64,000 nt of DNA, from NCBI GenBank assembly GCA_051294905.1, contig CM119379.1, positions 6,386,001-6,450,000 on the forward strand, given 5' to 3'. Of the stretch, positions 4,765 to 15,938 are shown one piece after another. How positions within the stretch are numbered: position 1 is the first letter of the stretch; every line of letters begins with the position of its first letter. Both the position numbers and the translations under genes were made by a program. The DNA is from Botryllus schlosseri. Lineage: Eukaryota. Below the pieces are notes generated by a model, which had not been told where the DNA came from, did no database searches, and saw nothing but the letters and a program-made list of their open reading frames with translations.

Positions 4765-4937
4765 CCGGGGTAATTTATATCTGCGTCAAAACAAATACCC
4801 TGGTATTGATCACTATTCCGTCCCAATAAACAACGGGTAACAGTCGTATAAAAGTACTGGAAATGAGGAATTACCAAGTAGTATACACTCAAAGGACGGG
4901 CCTACCCATATAGTAGCCAGTATAGCTTTTGTCAACT

Positions 4938-7900
4938 ATGTCGCGTCGCGAAGTTGCTAAAACAAAAACGACAGGGTCTAAAAGACATGAGAATTTACTG
5001 CACACCAAGTATTTCTGCCAAGTCATAAATGGAAAGGTAAGTAATAATATTTCATGCAGTTTTTCGTGACTAAAGTATGCTCATCAACATACACCTGAAC
5101 AGTGTACACTATGGCAGTACTTCCTAAACTGATGGCCAGGTAACAGATTTGGCGGTCGCAGAGTGTAGACAAATACCGCAAGCAATACGCCACAATTGAA
5201 CTATTGAACATTGAATTTAGATACATCACATATAGCGAAAATGTGAAAATAATATATAATGCATATGCGTGCTGGTCTCGGATCGTGTTTTCTGGAAAAT
5301 GATTATTGTCATATGGCTCGTGGCAACAAACCTTTTAACTGTAGAGTAGTTTTCATTTCGCGCTGCTTATCGTATTTTCCGTGAGGGGTTGCATAAAATT
5401 TCAAAAGAATAAAGTGGGTCGCAAGCAAAAACATAAGGGAACTATTGCCGCCAACCCCAAAACTCATACTAGAAAATATAACTACTCGCGTCTTCACATC
5501 TTCGAATTCCTGAGTCTATATAAAATGTTACAAAATATTAACCTTGGCAACCTACTTCGCTGAAAAGTGTCAACAGATGAGTCGGGATAATCCTCACAGA
5601 AGTCTTATCTTACATAATGCGTCACAATTTACAGACAGTTAGGATTCTCTATAGGACAAGCTAACTTTATGATCCCCACCATTAATATGTGATATCTGTG
5701 CATTCAAAGGTGGATCTGTTGGGTGATCCTACCATGTTGACTGTGATGGAACTTGGAGTTCCGGAAATGTTATCGCGGTCTGAGGCATCGTTCCGGTACG
5801 TTCTGGTAATCGATGTTAGCTCGAGCATGGCTGTGGAAGCGGACGACAGAGCTGGCTCTCTTCTAGACAGAGTAAAGGTGAATTTTAGAGACGATGCTTT
5901 GCTATCGAGTCACTCAGAGAGGTGGTTGTGTGCCCCTAAACTAGACAACGCATTATATTGTATAAGAAATTGAACATTGCTAAACATACGAGTGTATTCA
6001 AGTATTTCGTTTGATTCGCAGGTGTTCATTGAACTTGTCATACAAAATGTTTCTCGACACGATTCCCTAGCTATCGTCAGCTTCTCAGATGACGCGGAAA
6101 TTGAATTTCCTATGACAAAAATGAACGAAACAGCAAAAGTAAGTGTTGAACCAGCTTTCGAAGTCGCACACATCCACTTTAACGCAGTTGATAACCTTGA
6201 TATCTACATGAATTCACAATAGAGCCCTATGGTGCTCACTGCTCAGAAATTCTGAAAAGGAAGAATATCAGTGACTTTGACATGACCAGATGAAATGCGC
6301 CATTTTCTTTATATTTATCAGCAAAACGCTCGATCGATTGTGAAGTATCTCGCTACAAAACAGAACACCAACCTCGAGAGTGGATTGATGACTGCCGTAG
6401 AAGTTTTAGCGAAGTGAGTAATACGTGAGTCATGTAAGGTAGGGCTGTTGAAAAAACACTTCCAAATACCTTAACAAACCTGATCAAGTCGAAGCAGAAG
6501 GCTTATATAGCTACAGACCACTTACAATTGGAAACTGTTGACCGTATTATACCCAACCCAAACAAATAAATATTACGATATGCGATTACCAACACTATTG
6601 ATAAAATTAAAAAATGAATTTGATATTTTTCGCGTTTGGCGAAACTATAGACAACAAATAGTAACAAGCGTAACATATCAATAAAAGTCGAGCATTCGAG
6701 TATAGTGGTTGAAACGCTCAGTGTAAAAGGGGATTCGGGGTGCCTCCAGACATTTGGTTTATCCCCCTAGTGCAGGCCGCGACCAAAGCTTTGGGGGGGG
6801 GGCTGACGAAGTTCTGTATAATATGCTCATAGCTCACAGTAATTATTTTTTAGCAATCCATGCGAGGACTCTCTTGACTGCATCGTCCTATTCACGGATG
6901 GTGAAACTAACACCGGACAAGAGGACGCTGAAGAATTGGTGACAAAATTCAAAGCGGCCCAGGATAATCTCAATAAGAAGCATTCTGTACCGCTATCAGC
7001 ACTGACAATAGGGCAATATATGCCTGTGCTATTGACACAGGTATAACTATTATGCGACCTATCTTATTGACAGAATATCTGACAAACCGATATTAGCTGA
7101 GTTGTTGAGTTGAAAATTAGTTCTTTACCGATTTAGCTCTCCGAATCTCTCGGAAGCGACGCATTTTACTGGCTTAGTGAAGAAGAAGACTTCGAAACTG
7201 ACATGCTTCTACCTATTCTCTTGCGGTAACCCTAATAGTTTTTGATACTACTTTTATATTCATTACCTGATTACCACTAGTCTTATCTTGGATTATACTC
7301 GTATTTGCAAAATAGTTATAAACGGATTATGGTATATAGGATCCTTAGAAGTTTATACGGAATCATTTGGAAATATATGTGATATAAATTCACAGTGAAA
7401 CGACAAGAGTGACGGACGTTAGTATTGAGCTAACGTGCCTATCAAATTTTACCTTCGATGTGGATTCCCTGCTAATGACACACTTACAAGTAAGTATAAT
7501 ATATATGTATATCATAAATCGGCGTAACTATTAGCATTATGCAACGTAATGAAACTTACAATCATCCGCATACGATTGTATAGTCGTGGAGGTTGGAGCC
7601 GTTTGGTAAATCGCCTATTTTTTGTGGATATCACCGGTTTTCCATTATAGCGTATTCTGCTTACCGGGATTCTGGTATATTAGCCGTTATTATTTATTAC
7701 ATATATCATGGACCAAAAATATGGAATGACATTCCTTCAGCCATGAAGGAAATGTCTTTTTCGGCCTCTTGTCGCGAATTTAAATCTCATTTACTCTTGA
7801 CATATTGAAGTTAGTTAGATTTGCATTGTAATTGCCGTATATTGGATTCGATAATCTTACGTTGCCAAATTGTTTTTTTTTTTCGATAATTTGAACTGAC

Positions 7901-10900
7901 AACTCTGTACATTTATCCATCTTCTATTTATTTTTTGTTTTCATTGCTTTTCATTCTTTCGTTTACTTCGTTATTATTGTTGCCTGTTACTCTGTTGTTG
8001 TTCCAACTTACCACTGTTCTACCTGTTTTTAATTTATTGCTGACGCGAGACTATATTAAAATACGATATTTTACTCCAACGATGCAGCTGACTAGATGGT
8101 CCCTAAGGACCGTATCGCTGCTACATGTATTTTATTTTGAACGCAATTTTTTGCTCAATAAAAACTATCTCTATCTCTCTTACATTATGCTATTCAAGCG
8201 CTAAATCTCCTCTGTGCATTGCTGTGATATTCTTCCTATTGGTATAGTTGCACCATAATGACGGTATTCGCCTCGTATTTGCGACCGCAAATAGCTCCTA
8301 ACATGACATTACCGGCGTTAACTTCGTTCCAGAAATCATCTTTAACGACGATAGAGTACTTCATGCATTCTATACCTGGCGGCGTCAAGAAACATTTTCC
8401 GCTCACAATCATACCTCCCGAAGGAGACCTGGAGGTGATACACATATTTGCCACGCAATAACGTTCTGAAGGATTAATGGAGTCTTGCGATTTAGAGCTT
8501 TCAAGGAAAACCGGTCGTGGAAGTGAAAATATCATACAGTCCAATTAAAAAATCAAGACGAGAAATCATGGAAGACATCATATTTTCCAACGAGAGCATC
8601 AAATCGTGCAGAACAAAATTGAATAAAGGTATAGCTGAAATTGTAAACAAGATTAGTTAAATTGTCGCAGGTCCCAGCTATATAGTAGAAAGTATTTCGG
8701 CTCTAGCTATATATTCCATTCTTTGCGTTTCTGTCTACTGACTTGCGAAAGCTATACTGAGACTTTTAAACAAAATTCATTTAAGCTATCATATTGGGAT
8801 TATAAATAGAGTATATAGCAAATAGTAAAGTCACATTTCTTTTAGAGGACATCCGAGCAATCACAATCAATATAGTGACCTTTAACAGGACTTCGCTAAT
8901 TTCGCTTCAACCACGTGTTATTATCTGGTATCTAAAAGGTATCGCTTAATGGAGTTTCCAATATTACATTCAAGTTTCCAATTAAATTTCGGGTGAATTC
9001 TAGTTTTTAAAGGGTCAGGTGCAGTATTTTTCTCGTACCCAGTGTCTATAATGACCGACGGAAGGAAGTGAAATGGTAGTAATAGGAATTCTACTCATAC
9101 GTGCTGTATGCGTACAATAAAACAGTCTACGTAGTTCAACATCATTTACAGCACACGAACAGCCGGTCAGTCAATTTTCTAATGACTTTTTGTTTTTCGT
9201 AAATGATCATTGATCATGTTGCAACGAGGTCTGAACTATGGCATTATCGTATAAAACCGACCCGTTCTTGACTCCTAACTATTATTTAGTGGAAATGGGC
9301 TTATAATTTTAGTATTCAAAGAAATCGATTATCATCACTCTTGTATAGTCATTACAATTAATACTCAATTCGGATGCTAGCACTCGAATCTGTGACCAGT
9401 CATAACAAAGCTACCTGTTACTAATATGTTCTTCATAAATCCCACTAAACAGAGTATAATTGTACACTGTGACCCGTATACGTATATATCCTCTGCTGTG
9501 ATATTTCGTACCGCTGATCAATGTTCCCTCTAATTTTTGACTAGTCTTCGGGCACTCACCAACTTGCTGCACAGATCCTTGGACAACAGTGCGTAACGAC
9601 TAAAATTTTTCACCTTGTCCTCTCCTCAGCTGGTGACCTGTGGTGTACCCCAAGGCTCAGTACTTGGACCGGACCTCTTCACACCTTATATGTCAACGAC
9701 ATTTTTGAAACCTCCTCATTGAACACCACACTGTTCGCTGATGACTCACCTCCTTTCTTCCGCATCTTCGACGGCAGAGCTGGATGCCCTGACTAGTGAC
9801 CAAATGCCTAAAGTCCATGAGTGGACGGCCCAGAACAACCTTTGCATAAACGCTTCGAAATCACAATTGCTGACAGTCCGTCAGCCCATTTCCAACACAG
9901 ATAATGCCAAATATCTCGGGGTTTTAATTGACTCGAACATGTCCTGGAAGAGTCATATTCAGTCCCTAGACACTAAATTATCACCGAAGTGCTGCCTGTT
10001 CTACAGCCTTAGGCGCTTCATGCCATCATGGGTTCTTCTGATACTCTTAATCTTAATCCAATCGAAGTTCCATTATGGCATCCTTTGTTGGGGGGCTGCC
10101 ACTAAAACTGCACTCAAGCCACTGCAAAAACTACAGCATAAAGTACTCCGAATCATAGCTAGAGCCTGGTTGCCTGGTTGCCCATCCAACAAGTCGCTGC
10201 TGAAGAAATTCGGCGTCCTAAACATAGAAGATATGCGGAAACTAGAAATCGCCAAGTTTATGTATCAGTTCCACTGCGGTCGTTGCCCCGAATATTTCAA
10301 TGACTTCTTTACCTCGGAATCAAAAGCGCAAAAGTACAACACACGCGCGTCCACGTCGTCCAAATTTCATATGATCGACCGAAAAGATCATCGCTCTATC
10401 AAATATGCCCGACCTGATGTGTGGAACAGTATCCCGCCTGCCATCAGACAGTCGACGAGCATGTCCACATTCAAGTCGAAATACAAGCAATTACCATTAA
10501 ATAAATACAGTCCATCCTCAAGATTACCGGACCACGACTGACCTATCGATCTCGCTTCCCATGACATGCCGCCCTATTCTTGTCGCTTTCTTTTTCTATA
10601 CTGTCTTCTTTACTTTCATTCAGTGTGCATGCCTCCTATTTACATCGCCTAGGCCAAGGTGGGTGTCTGATTCCATAGACAAATCCAAGTCACTTCGATA
10701 TCTTCCTGTCTATTCATTGTATCGCATTTTTGTGGTGTATTGAACTGATAAAATTGCTAATAAACCAATGATGATGATGATGATTTTTGTGCGCAACTTA
10801 GAAATTCTGTGCGCAAAGACCGTGTCAGCACTGCGCATTTGCGCACGTGCGCAGCTTAGAGGGAACATTGCCCCAGGTTATGATATCCATCTCTTCTTCT

Positions 10901-13900
10901 TTGTTGTTTTTTCGGCTTCTGGTGGGGGCGTCGTTGTCTATGAGCCTCCCTGCTTTCAAATGCAGCGAAACTAATACATATATGGACTTATTGCATTGTA
11001 CATACCTTGTTCTTAGCGATCCGGAAATATTCGTGTTTATTTAAATATGAAAATATCATTCAATTTTAGATTGCGGCTATGTACTTCAAAGCGTCTCGCT
11101 ATTTTTATATTTTATTATATATTGTGCGCTAAAGGAGGTGCACGCTTGACTAATACATTTCTGCACCATCCTATCCCAATCATGTGTTCCTCCGAAGTCC
11201 ACATCACCCACATATTTGGTTGCTTGCTTATTGCGAATATGTATGCTTCCAGAAAAGGGCGTTCTGTACTCAGACTCATCTGAAGGCGTATCGGCATACA
11301 TTGTTGAAAACAACCATCTCGATCTGTCATGGAATGCCGCTCAGACAGCTCTAGCAAAAGTCGTGAGGGAAGATTGCAGAATGCTCACTTTGCGAGAGCT
11401 TGACAACGCACTCTATCTTCTACTGTAAGTATCGGTGTGCCAGTTGTCAGTATTTATGGTCAAATCATTCGATGGCAAGAGCATTAGTGAAAACCACTGA
11501 ACGGCATATTACAACTACGCCGACATAATCTGGCGTAGCATAGGTCACTGCATTCGCGATACGTGCGCCACAATAGAATATAATCATCAGGATTGTTCGA
11601 AATTACCTCTTTTTTTCAAATCGGCTGCTAGCTATAATATTAGCTAAAAATTTTGGAGAACAAATTTGACCCAATTCCAACGAGTAAAAGTGAAGCTATT
11701 GGATTTGAAAAAATTCGATGTGGGTAATCCTAGAATTATATTAACGGAAAACTCGAATAACTTGAATAACATATTTATTTTGAATAGGTTTTATAGACAA
11801 CTTGACAATTTCATGGGTTAGCCAGTAAACATTTTCCAACAATTTTCCAACTCTAATAGCTTCACTGTTATACTCGTTGAAATTGAGCCAACTCTAGAGT
11901 GCGACGTTTATTTAGTCAACCAAACAATTTCAGCTAAGAGCCGCAACAATTTGAAAAACCCTATGAATCATAAATATGAATATACTTAGAATTTACGAAA
12001 TAAGCAATCCGTTCTGCTGTCTGCGATAATTTCAATGCTTCCATATGAGACACATTCTTGAAGAGGTGCACACTGCACATATTCCATATGGGCGATCGTT
12101 AATGTTTTCGGGGTGTATCAGTAAGCCTAAATATACTTAACAAAGTAAATATACTAACGGCTTGTTTTGCAATCGTCACAGCGAAGGTCCCAACAGCGTG
12201 GAGCTCGATTCTTTCGAAGAAGCATTGGAAGGCGTCGAAGATATCAAAACAACCTATCGTGGTATATTCGGACATCGGAATAAATGCACGACAATGATTG
12301 ATGAATGTGCGAATGAATGGAAGGACATTTTGAGCTTTGGGAAAACAATTGCAAAGTAACAAATACCACAGTCAATTGCTCTAGTCGCGGCGATAATAAT
12401 AGTCTATTTGTCCTTTTTTTTTGTTTCAGTCCTTACAACTACGGAAGAATAGCCTCTCTTCATTCGTCTTTGGCGGCTGAAATGCCCGTTCCGAAGGGAG
12501 TTCACAAGGAGTCCCATCACCAGCATTTCATGCCGAAACAAATTTGGAAACGGCTGAAGAAATTTGAAACTGTAAACTATGAATGCACTGTCAAGTATCC
12601 TCGCAATGATAATGTAGCTTTATCGTTCTTTTTCCTAGATCATGAAAAAGCGAGCTAAGAGGCAAAAGGAAAACTCGCAGACGAAGTAAGAATACGGTTT
12701 CACTTAGGGTTGCATTTAAAACAAAAATCAATTTAAAACAAACATGTTTTCTATTGTTTGTTTTTGTCTCAATCCATGACGTCACAAATATTCAATTGTG
12801 ACGTCAGAGTGGATTGCCATTGACAATTGAAAATATAGGGTAAATATAGCTCCTTTGACGAATTAGGCTTCCGTTCGAACCCCTTACATACGGACCTAAA
12901 TTTTCTTAACCAGGAAGGACTAAATCGTCATGCAGCATTTTTACGGTCGGCGATAATCATTATCAGAACATTACTTCCGTACCAATGATCTATAATTCTA
13001 TATCTACGTAGCCTACTAAAGCTATTGAACCGACTATTTCGAGGGCTCCAACCATCGCATATCGTGTAGGTGGCTATATGTCGGGTGGTAATCGTCCGTA
13101 GGCTTACACAACATGTTTTTTGGAAAGAGTTTACACAATTACGGCATAATTATACAACTTGAAAAAAAACTCAATTTTGGTTTATTTTTAAAGGCATTTG
13201 TTTAAAACACTGTTTAAAACATGTTTTAAACAACGTGTTCCAAACAGCCATTTGTTTTGAATGCAGTCCTACGATAGATGTATGACTGTGACATCTTAAC
13301 AATAGATGCTTAATTTCTAGAGCAGTTTTGCTGGCATAGAAGACACATTATCTCCTAGTTGAGTTCTTCTCAGTTGACAAAACCGCATCTCCATGTCAGT
13401 ATATTAGCTTATCTAATTCTAAGGGTATCACTGTGCAAATGCATACCGCACTTATGATATACACGGCGTTGGCACCATGCAATATCGGATTCTGATGGTT
13501 CTAGCTGCCCCGTATAGTCTACTTACCACATATACCACGCATTTCATTATGGTATATTAATGACAAAAAATAGGAGATTTTTCGGTTACATCGGTTTATA
13601 TTCACGTCTTCTTCAGTGTTTTCGGCTGCAAAACCATTCTGCTTTCGGAATCTCTTCGAACGAAAGTCTACGGCAACAAAAAGGAATCGATGGCTGACCT
13701 GATAGCCAGACACGGTGGACGACCCGGTAAATAGTGCCTTTTATCGTACATATACAGCGTTTCAAATCGTTATTATAAAGGAACTTTGTTTGACAGAATA
13801 CTACGTGATTGTAAGCCCATATAAGCATCATCCGGAATGGTATACCGAAAAAAGTTTTCGCAACACACTGCTCGTCAGCTCGTGGAATGACCACGAAACC

Positions 13901-14287
13901 AATTCTCTGATTGTGCGATCCGCCAAAAGGGCACACGTATGCATATCCTTTGTTGCTATATTTCTACGTAAATTATAGTGGTTGTTCATCAACGTCAGAT
14001 GAATTAATAGCTGAAAGTTAATGATACAGTAATGGCAAGTTTCCTGGTGTGATACTGAACAGTTTGATTGTGATGTCGCAATAGCGATTAGTGAGTGATC
14101 AGTATGTCGGCCTTACTCAGAAATTTATCTCAGATATATACCGTCCAGCCGTTATTACCAATTGCGACAAATAATCAAAATTTCTATTCAGGTGCCTATT
14201 GTCCGCGAGGAATTTGTGCTGGATTGCCTGCGGCGAAAAAAGTATTTGAAGATAGAAGGATATTTTTATAACAGTGCAATGACTTAA
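4938..14287 (+). CDS. VWA-domain protein with C-terminal BRCT domain (16 exons, 653 aa)
   Basis: Exons 4938-5036, 5710-5877, 6022-6138, 6322-6413, 6854-7040, 7137-7225, 7396-7489, 8333-8434, 8496-8628, 11253-11424, 12182-12355, 12430-12571, 12639-12685, 13617-13726, 13797-13936, 14192-14287. All are GT-AG and phase-compatible, totalling 1962 nt. MIDAS motifs: VLVIDVSSS, NTNLESG, VLFTDG. BRCT motifs: VFGCKTILLS, DLIARHGG, VPIVREEFVLDCL..KYL. Exon 1 is the least certain. Confidence 0.8.
7707..8180 (+). mobile_element. 3' end of an L2/CR1-like LINE (intronic)
   Basis: GPKIWNDIPSAMKEMSFSASCREFKSHLL* is a typical ORF2 C-terminus. It is followed by a T-rich 3' UTR, a GGTCC-CTAA-GGACC hairpin, AATAAA and a (TATCTC)n tail. 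Confidence 0.7.
9519..10870. mobile_element. Short hAT-like MITE (about 100 bp) split by a LINE insertion
   Basis: 15-bp TIRs CAATGTTCCCTCTAA (9519) and TTAGAGGGAACATTG (ends 10870). The flanking 8-mers match at only 5/8. Confidence 0.7.
9540..10783 (+). mobile_element. 5'-truncated L2/CR1-like LINE with frameshifted reverse transcriptase
   Basis: GVPQGSVLGP, YVNDI and LFADD motifs at 9640-9746 across frameshifts. ORF 9741-10541 contains W...NNL.IN.SK, YLGVLID and WNSIP. It ends in an (ATG)n tail, and ATTTTTG occurs at both junctions (putative TSD). Confidence 0.9.
11640..11900. repeat. Dispersed repeat family B copy with internal inverted repeat
   Basis: CCAATTCCAACGAGTAAAAGTGAAGCTATT and its reverse complement lie about 180 nt apart. 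The core TTGGCTCAATTCCAACCAGT recurs at about 26335, 26500, 26630, 28994, 29141, 35184 and 35328. Confidence 0.55.
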
Positions 14288-15938
14288 TGTATTCGGTATG
14301 GAATATGTCCTCATCAGCAGGCGCAGAAGGGACTTGGGATCTGGACATTGTATATCTCTAACAACAGTAGGCCTATGTAGTGTGTTTAGGCCAAGTTTGT
14401 AATGTCATGACTTCCTCAAGCGAAAATACACGACAGGACGACATATGAGTCTGTGTACGCACTGTGCACTATATACGATATATATTCTGTTAATCTGCAA
14501 ATGGAAAATTGAAAACACATATTGACGCATGTCTGAAATGGTTACATGACTCGTTATTTATTGGTATATGAGTTTTAATCAACATTAACACCAGCAGCGC
14601 TTAGATTTTAGGAAGCCGCTCTCCTAAAATACATGCTTTTCATGCCGGGTTCCAGTGAAAAGTTATGAAGGCAGATGTCTTTTGCCATTTGGGTTTTGTC
14701 AACCACAGAGCGGTATACAGTATTGAATTCTGTCATCGGAGTGACGGGAAACAAATTTTCGTTTCATGGGATTGAGATGGAAAATGTGGTTTTGGTAAAT
14801 ATCCTAAATGCAATTAAAGTTGTCTTGTCTACAAGAAAAATAGACAAGTAAATCTGTTGACGACAATCGAAACTATTTTCCCACCTATACTTCCGTAAAT
14901 TCAAAAGGATAGGCTATTATTGTCTCGTGGTAGTCGCGACAACGTGCGGAATGTTATTGTATTTAAATGCCCTATTGGCAATTTGACATCGGAGTCGAGG
15001 AAGGAGTGATGACTTTTGCCAATCATAACGCTAAGTGAAAAGTCTGCTACTTCTTCAGCGTGTAAGTTGCAAAAGTACCGCAAGAAATCCCAAATTATCA
15101 TTTATAATGCCCGACCTATCACCTCCTAATTTGACGTATTATACGAAACGTACCACTGAAATTCAAAAGGGATCCAAAATCATCCCTCTGATTCGTCTTC
15201 TTCATATCCGTCAATTTAATAAGTAGACTGCGCTACAGCATCCGGACAAGGAATGTTACAATAATTTAGACCGGTGGTCCCCAACGTGGGTGATATCACC
15301 CCCTCCCCCAGTGAACGATTTTAAGAAACGAAGGGAGAAACGTTAGAACGTCCAGTGAGTTATATTTAATTAAAACGGCCAAATGCACTTGAAGATGGCT
15401 CATTTTTAGATATGACGTGAAATTCAACTAAAAAAGGTCAACTCAACACGTAAAGTAGAGCACCTACTCGGGAAAATGACCAAATTTTTAGTCAATTTAC
15501 AATCGATCAGAGTTGGGTGGATACTTTTCTTGTTAATTTGTCCCCCTTTTCGGATTCGTAAATGTGTGTGTGTGGGGGGGGGGGGGGGCGAAATTTGTGC
15601 CGAGCTGTACAAGGGAACGATGAGTCGAAAAAGGGTTTGCAAATATTCTGTGACCCACTCCTTATCCTAGAGTCATAGAGTTGTGAATTTTACGATTTTA
15701 CGATCCGCGCCATCTATTGAGAATGCTGTATTGGGTCATAAGCGAACTGTTGTCTCCATAACGCCCCGTAGATACACTCAGATATCGCGCATAGCGCTCA
15801 CTTTGTTCAGCATTTAGCAAACAAACTCGAATGTATATTGTACAGTAGTAGCCTACACGCTTGTGGCTTATGTTCTATTCCCGCCAAATCCAAGTATTAC
15901 AAGCTACTCTGGTATTGTAGTTTCCGTCTTCACGAAAG

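Follow-up and report, generated by a model that had tools for sequence, protein, structure and literature searches.

A probable 16-exon VWA-BRCT gene in Botryllus schlosseri and its styelid-type ascidian relatives

A 64,000-nucleotide (nt) stretch of the Botryllus schlosseri genome, referred to here as the window (assembly GCA_051294905.1, contig CM119379.1, positions 6,386,001 to 6,450,000), poses a question of gene structure. Exons encoding a VWA domain are followed by an apparent stop codon, and beyond it lie exons encoding a BRCT domain. Are these two genes, or one gene whose protein carries both domains? A sequence-only reading of the window had proposed one fusion protein of 653 amino acids (aa). 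The analysis described below indicates that positions 4938-14287 on the + strand very probably represent one 16-exon protein-coding gene with a VWA-BRCT architecture, a member of a family of styelid-type ascidians.

Gene structure across an apparent stop codon

Candidate exons were joined over 4800-14500. Sixteen of them, spanning 4938-14287 on the + strand, form an open frame from an ATG at 4938 to a TAA at 14285-14287, and the product has exactly the 653 aa predicted earlier. All 16 exons have AG before and GT after them, and the joins are in frame. Two relatives are compared with the model: P0008, a 657-aa open reading frame (ORF) with the full-length VWA-BRCT layout on a 2968-nt transcript contig of another organism, and P0003, a 654-aa protein of Styela clava. 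The features of the gene are as follows.

4938..5036, + strand: exon 1, start ATG, aa 1-33; basic N-terminus with conserved KYFCQV; gapless colinearity with P0008 and P0003
5710..5877, + strand: exon 2, aa 34-89; start of VWA, with D68-x-S70-x-S72 of the metal-ion-dependent adhesion site (MIDAS)
6022..6138, + strand: exon 3, aa 90-128; VWA; matches Pfam VWA_2 from this exon alone (E 2e-4)
6322..6413, + strand: exon 4, aa 129-159; VWA, MIDAS T144
6854..7040, + strand: exon 5, aa 160-221; VWA, MIDAS D174 (FTDGETN); top genomic match of the family profile (E 1.4e-21)
7137..7225, + strand: exon 6, aa 222-251; end of VWA; FYWLSEEEDFE invariant across the family
7396..7489, + strand: exon 7, aa 252-282; start of beta-sandwich
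8333..8434, + strand: exon 8, aa 283-316; beta-sandwich
8496..8628, + strand: exon 9, aa 317-361; beta-sandwich
11253..11424, + strand: exon 10, aa 361-418; helical region; joint 11424>12182 in contigs X1 and X2
12182..12355, + strand: exon 11, aa 418-476; helical region; 56% identity to P0003 427-479
12430..12571, + strand: exon 12, aa 476-523; GRIASLHSSLAAEMP motif, in which G, R, S, S, E, M and P are invariant across the family
12639..12685, + strand: exon 13, aa 524-539; basic linker KKRAKRQK; joints 12571>12639 and 12685>13617
13617..13726, + strand: exon 14, aa 539-576; BRCT beta1-alpha1-beta2 (ILLSESLR ... ARHGGRP)
13797..13936, + strand: exon 15, aa 576-622; subfamily-specific insert, then BRCT beta3-alpha2
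14192..14287, + strand: exon 16, coding part, aa 623-653; BRCT beta4-alpha3 (VPIVREEFVLDC), stop TAA
14288..14507, + strand: 3' untranslated region; contig X2 is unbroken over 14192-14507, and 14507 is the limit of X2

The apparent stop arises at the end of exon 13, which ends in phase 2 (..ACG AA) before the donor GTAAGA; read unspliced, this gives AAG TAA, with the stop at 12686-12688. Every phase-2 intron with a consensus GTAA donor yields a TAA in this way, and the stop is therefore uninformative by itself. A stop codon of this type can hide downstream exons, a caution for annotation.

Transcript evidence was sought in reads and contigs of four runs aligned to 11200-14900, with transcript contigs from X1 and X2 and raw reads of the RNA-seq runs X17 and X21. 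Contigs X1 (1082 nt) and X2 (2098 nt) both skip 11424>12182, 12355>12430, 12571>12639, 12685>13617 and 13936>14192, all with GT..AG borders. The joint 12685>13617 is exact in the contigs of both runs and skips 931 nt; together with the neighbouring joints it places the apparent stop within a removed intron. The earlier proposal that the stop codon lies inside a strong donor (ACG AA/GTAAGA), and that one transcript links the VWA gene to three BRCT exons, is thus borne out. Contig X2 alone also skips 13725>13796, and with it all three junctions singled out by the sequence-only reading (12685-13617, 13726-13797 and 13936-14192) are seen in contigs. Contig X1 retains the 70-nt intron 14 (13726-13797), which is spliced in contig X2; retention ends the frame directly after GGRP and gives a BRCT-truncated product. 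Contig X2 reaches ~1 kb upstream of 11251, sufficient for nearly the whole coding sequence, and X17 contributes six raw reads for 12571>12639 and two for 13725>13796. For exons 11 and 15 the assembly contains just one 100% match each, and on this ground the intronless contigs were judged not to derive from a retrocopy. Since introns are removed exactly, one intron is retained and both exons are single-copy, X1 and X2 can reasonably have come only from spliced RNA.

The borders of exons 1-9 are based on the colinear, gap-free alignments to P0008 and P0003. Alignment of the 653-aa model to P0008 is without gaps (639 columns, 639 residues) and validates the 5' exon borders.

Intron 13 is 931 nt in length, of which ~555 nt is a high-copy repeat resembling a miniature inverted-repeat transposable element (MITE).

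12705..13260, no strand assigned: MITE-like repeat of ~555 bp in intron 13; depth in thousands and opposite-strand joints among the aligned reads

The first ~50 and last ~60 bases of this repeat match one another in opposite orientation. A first look at the genome gave 5402 candidates; copies are 75-81% identical and spread over many contigs. The repeat is also abundant among the contigs and raw reads of the RNA runs. The length of the gap and the very high depth in intron 13 are both explained by it, and because the repeat masks the signal, retention of this intron is not readable from depth.

Two separate genes could be envisaged, a VWA gene ending at the TAA at 12686 and a BRCT gene downstream, the joined contigs being products of read-through or chimeras of assembly. 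An unused donor at 12685 leads straight to a stop and intron 13 is long. In addition, the raw reads of X17 and X21 list no read over 12685>13617, where depth is at most ~3. This last result weighs against a single gene, as does the provenance of X1 and X2, whose origin from RNA is a guess and which both come from one study. Nevertheless, two genes are very improbable. The joint in the contigs of two runs has exact GT..AG borders, exon 14 has no in-frame start of its own upstream, and ~555 nt of the length of intron 13 represents a recent repeat insertion. Moreover, this continuous protein also occurs in the messenger RNA contig of the other organism, in the Styela clava models and at three paralogous loci.

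Intron 9 carries a second repeat-derived sequence, outside the protein. An ORF of 266 aa at 9600-10541, in the same orientation as the VWA-BRCT gene, bears the C-terminal part of RVT_1.

9741..10541, + strand: reverse-transcriptase fragment of a retroelement in intron 9; Pfam RVT_1, C-terminal part only, E 0.0045

Domain layout of the predicted protein

The predicted protein consists of a basic N-terminus, the VWA, a beta-sandwich, a helical bundle ending GRIASLHSSLAAE, the KKRAKRQK linker and a single basic BRCT; the order given by the sequence-only reading was correct. No signal peptide and no hydrophobic or membrane span were found in computations on the window protein. The isoelectric point changes along the chain, from 4.3 in the VWA to 11.2 in the linker and 9.5 in the BRCT. 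Identity to P0008 is highest in the BRCT (76%), followed by the VWA (72%), the helical region (67%) and the linker (19%). With distant paralogues, identities are ~52% for the VWA, 45-48% for the BRCT and 25-28% for the helical region. Judged from these identities, the BRCT is clearly under constraint, and it is in the helical part that paralogues differ.

These comparisons bear on whether the main product could be a BRCT-less protein of ~540 aa, formed by retention of intron 13 or early polyadenylation, with the VWA-BRCT form a minor isoform. Such a shorter product has parallels. Isoform X3 of Styela clava LOC120346726 (P0014, 532 aa) stops exactly at the corresponding junction, the retained intron 14 of contig X1 truncates the BRCT, and no BRCT is seen in the family members P0015, parD and parE. 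However, both transcript contigs splice at the 12685 donor, and the BRCT matches the VWA in conservation, an argument that the BRCT is in use. A predominantly BRCT-less product is accordingly considered quite unlikely.

Pfam detects VWA_2 in the orthologues P0008 (60.5 bits) and P0003 (53.7 bits), and P0010 falls within these two scores. The MIDAS residues D68, S70, S72, T144 and D174 (DxSxS...T...D) are all present in the window protein and are conserved in the family. The N-terminal 520 residues model as a VWA, a beta-sandwich and a bundle of four to five helices. Among solved structures, this N-terminal module best matches ArnB (8s05, E 2.6e-16), which is archaeal and Sec23/24-like; a bacterial VWA protein, ITIH1, Sec23/24 (E ~1e-10) and INTS13/14 are also matched. 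The best match in the AlphaFold DB is C3Y4Z7, with 30% identity over residues 26-514, and plant RING-VWA proteins and numerous VWFA proteins rank next.

A resemblance to plant WAV3-like and Vwaint-type proteins had been suggested from the sequence, and it is upheld in part. At the level of fold there is an apparent likeness to WAV3-type proteins: alignments with Swiss-Prot WAV3, WAVH2 and EDA40 span residues 21-521 of the model, with template modelling (TM) scores of only 0.24-0.30 at a model confidence of 62. A language-model search with the middle region pointed to Vwaint-bearing clusters, with an Atlas feature score of 0.88 and 180 features in common. The assignment to Vwaint itself did not hold, as Pfam Vwaint (PF14624) has no match at E <= 1 in P0003, P0008, P0010 or the single exons. 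An hhalign comparison of alignment A2 with P0016, a VWA-Vwaint-Vint protein, aligned only the VWA. Neither Vint nor Hint is matched by Pfam in the orthologues, whose C-terminus is the BRCT. The N-terminal module is WAV3/Vwaint-like in layout and is not filed as a Vwaint member.

The C-terminal domain was compared with the Pfam families BRCT_2 (PF16589) and BRCT (PF00533). BRCT_2 scores 36.9 bits in P0003, 31.9 in P0008 and 43.0 in P0010, above the curated cut-off of 27.3. Exon 16 alone matches profile positions 63-85 of 86 (E 0.0018) and lies below the cut-off, as expected from one third of a domain. An AlphaFold2 model of P0008:530-657, built with alignment A3, shows the order beta1-alpha1-beta2-beta3-alpha2-beta4-alpha3 at a predicted local distance difference test (pLDDT) score of 72.7; an insert between beta2 and beta3 is of low confidence, and the second subfamily is without it. 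The best 50 Foldseek matches to the PDB are all BRCTs. By VIA-align the closest structure is TopBP1 BRCT2 (Z 11.1, root-mean-square deviation 2.5, 90 residues), then Rad4 and MDC1 (10.9), PARP4 (10.7) and PARP1 (7scy_K, 10.1), all tied within 1 Z. The BRCT fold anticipated by the sequence-only reading is thus predicted, and the Phe noted there in place of the usual Trp corresponds to an alpha3 position that is Phe or Tyr.

A specific resemblance to the PARP1 BRCT, also proposed from the sequence, was dropped. In a PDB profile search only BRCTs were matched, with Chs5, Mdb1 and Rap1 as the best solved relatives and Crb2, Dpb11 and PARP4 also found; PARP1 is not among these sequence-profile matches at E <= 1. 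TopBP1, Rad4, MDC1 and PARP4 rank higher in structure, and the PARP1 score is tied with those of many BRCTs. The domain is a real but generic BRCT. A search with the P0008 BRCT region returned only P0008 itself among 53 candidates and is therefore uninformative on the origin of the domain.

Phosphopeptide-binding BRCTs have a pocket formed by Ser/Thr-Gly after beta1 and by a Thr and a Lys where alpha2 begins, as in the textbook BRCA1 motif. When the family sequences are read against this motif, rather than superimposed on a structure, the pocket appears half canonical. The Ser after beta1 is invariant (ILLSE), the Gly of the phosphate loop is Glu, the position equivalent to BRCA1 T1700 varies (S, A, D, D) and the Lys position is basic (K, K, R, K). 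Phosphopeptide binding is accordingly doubtful on the residues present, and binding of nucleic acid, poly(ADP-ribose) (PAR) or simply another protein is at least as likely. Two features of the analysis also count against the domain reading as a whole. The domain calls rest on single exons and on orthologues, as Pfam, folding and database searches used P0008 (68% identical) and alignments A1-A3, and the model of the N-terminal module is of middling confidence (pLDDT 61.8, from 11 sequences).

A small, tandemly duplicated family

Exon 11 was searched against 1.84 billion representatives and found P0003 at the corresponding position; P0003 is the product of Styela clava LOC120346390, annotated as "uncharacterized protein". 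Further Styela clava genes are LOC120346391, LOC120346725, LOC120346726 (three isoforms) and LOC120341230. Over the full length, the 653-aa model is 68% identical to P0008 and 54% to P0003. Profile searches gave no homologue outside the family apart from VWA-only matches, to a U-box-VWA-Vwaint-Vint protein (P0016) and a DnaJ-VWA protein (P0017). The expectation that the protein would not prove to be a named, widespread orthologue agrees with this outcome, the only relatives being Styela clava "uncharacterized protein LOC..." entries and unnamed transcript ORFs.

In the Botryllus schlosseri genome the family profile detects five more loci, all on contig C9. By tblastn, three of these, at 15.67-15.73 Mb, show in succession the VWA, the middle region and three BRCT exons, and their nearest counterparts are in the Styela clava LOC120346725/726 subfamily; one is on the - strand and two are in tandem on the + strand (C9:15666000-15728000). 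At the other two, at 25.02-25.05 Mb (C9:25022000-25054000), no BRCT was seen within 2.2-2.6 kb downstream. Counting the gene described here, Botryllus schlosseri therefore has a minimum of six loci on a single chromosome, four with BRCT exons; in Styela clava there are five genes or more. The two VWA-BRCT subfamilies are common to both species, which places the fusion before the subfamily split. From the sequences at hand, the family is small, tandemly duplicated and so far found only in styelid-type ascidians.

Stop codons occur inside some exon matches at the C9 loci, and one or more of these copies may be decaying. In Styela clava, the neighbouring genes LOC120346391 (P0009) and LOC120346390 (P0003) have near-identical BRCT regions and N-terminal parts of different subfamilies. 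Gene conversion, exons shared between the two genes or a chimeric model could be responsible.

Both domains are well known, and no literature was found on the VWA-BRCT architecture or the family; an intracellular WAV3-type VWA module with a C-terminal BRCT was not found described. What is new is an architecture made from known domains in a lineage-restricted family, whose relatives are already in RefSeq as uncharacterized, unnamed entries in which both domains are detectable. In one chordate lineage, a binding module that is reused widely elsewhere appears to have acquired a new targeting domain, and the combination was then kept and duplicated.

Possible function and comparison with known systems

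The VWA-sandwich-helix unit would be an intracellular binding module that is fused elsewhere to RING, U-box, kinase, DnaJ (as in P0017) or Hint domains and here to a BRCT. By analogy, this suggests a ligand-capturing module to which varied output or targeting domains are added. An adaptor role is tentatively proposed, in which a partner protein would be bound through one of its acidic residues at the MIDAS site and the resulting complex would be anchored by the BRCT to nucleic acid or to a protein that carries phosphate or ADP-ribose. Docking would probably take place in the nucleus, and BRCT-less or BRCT-truncated isoforms may modulate it. The linker in front of the BRCT is basic and similar to a nuclear localization signal. 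The VWA-BRCT protein is thus possibly an intracellular, perhaps nuclear, adaptor, a role inferred from its domains. It also provides a well-delimited case in which to ask what is read by a BRCT that is single, basic and non-canonical.

Tandem duplication and a fast-changing helical region leave room for a role that may be of the sensor type. The proteins would then be fast-evolving intracellular sensors in immunity or self/non-self recognition rather than scaffolds of the DNA-damage response, the VWA-helical part being the recognition surface and the BRCT a handle for signalling or oligomerisation. In keeping with such a role, the loci are tandemly duplicated and lineage-restricted, and the helical region diverges much faster among paralogues than the VWA or BRCT. 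VWA and Vwaint modules are also integrated in the wheat tandem-kinase resistance proteins Lr9 and Pm57 (PMC10260399; PMC11153570). On the other hand, copy number is modest, at about 5-6 per genome. Nor is any BRCT known to serve as a signalling handle in animal immunity. Sensors of this kind are considered unlikely. A bolder combination of the two ideas, which must be regarded as rather unlikely, is an ascidian invention that places a MIDAS capture module and a reader of phosphorylation, PAR or nucleic acid in one chain. It would be a single-chain counterpart of vWA-reader pairs such as ArnB-ArnA, and its tandem duplicates would have become a set of intracellular sensors that differ in their helical recognition surfaces.

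Of known proteins, the nearest to the VWA-BRCT protein are the RefSeq products of Styela clava LOC120346390, LOC120346391, LOC120346725 and LOC120346726 (P0003, P0009-P0014). They are equal in length, have the same VWA-beta-helical-linker-BRCT order, show 35-54% full-length identity to the window protein and carry Pfam VWA and BRCT_2. They differ in that they come from another species and are computer-predicted and unnamed.

The ArnB, Sec23/24, Ku and INTS13/14 class combines a VWA with a beta-barrel and resembles the N-terminal module in fold, with a very low identity of 10-16% and a TM of ~0.3. Archaeal ArnB (vWA) works with the phosphopeptide reader ArnA (FHA) (PMC6509490). The window protein has a VWA module and a reader-type domain in one chain, whereas the partner of ArnB is a separate protein with another fold.

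PARP4 (vault PARP), like the window protein, contains both a BRCT and a VWA, and its BRCT is single and has been reported to bind nucleic acid (PMC12212138). Its BRCT is N-terminal, the opposite order, and it has in addition WGR, a PARP catalytic domain and VIT; in the VWA-BRCT orthologues Pfam finds VWA and BRCT families only, and none of these three. The sequence-only reading had already set PARP4 apart by its domain order and catalytic domain, and this agrees with the present comparison. There is no sequence relationship between the two beyond generic domains.

A further parallel in layout is with the WAV3/WAVH/EDA40 RING ligases of plants and the VWA-Vwaint-Vint proteins of protists and fungi. 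These are likewise intracellular and without a signal peptide, and in them, as in the window protein, the VWA is followed by ~300 residues of beta and helical structure. The VWA of P0016, of the VWA-Vwaint-Vint type, is the nearest outgroup by sequence (E 1e-10). In WAV3 and VWA-Vint proteins the VWA module is fused to RING or U-box (Burglin, 2008; PMC2362128). Unlike these proteins, the window protein is without RING, U-box or Hint and carries a C-terminal BRCT instead.

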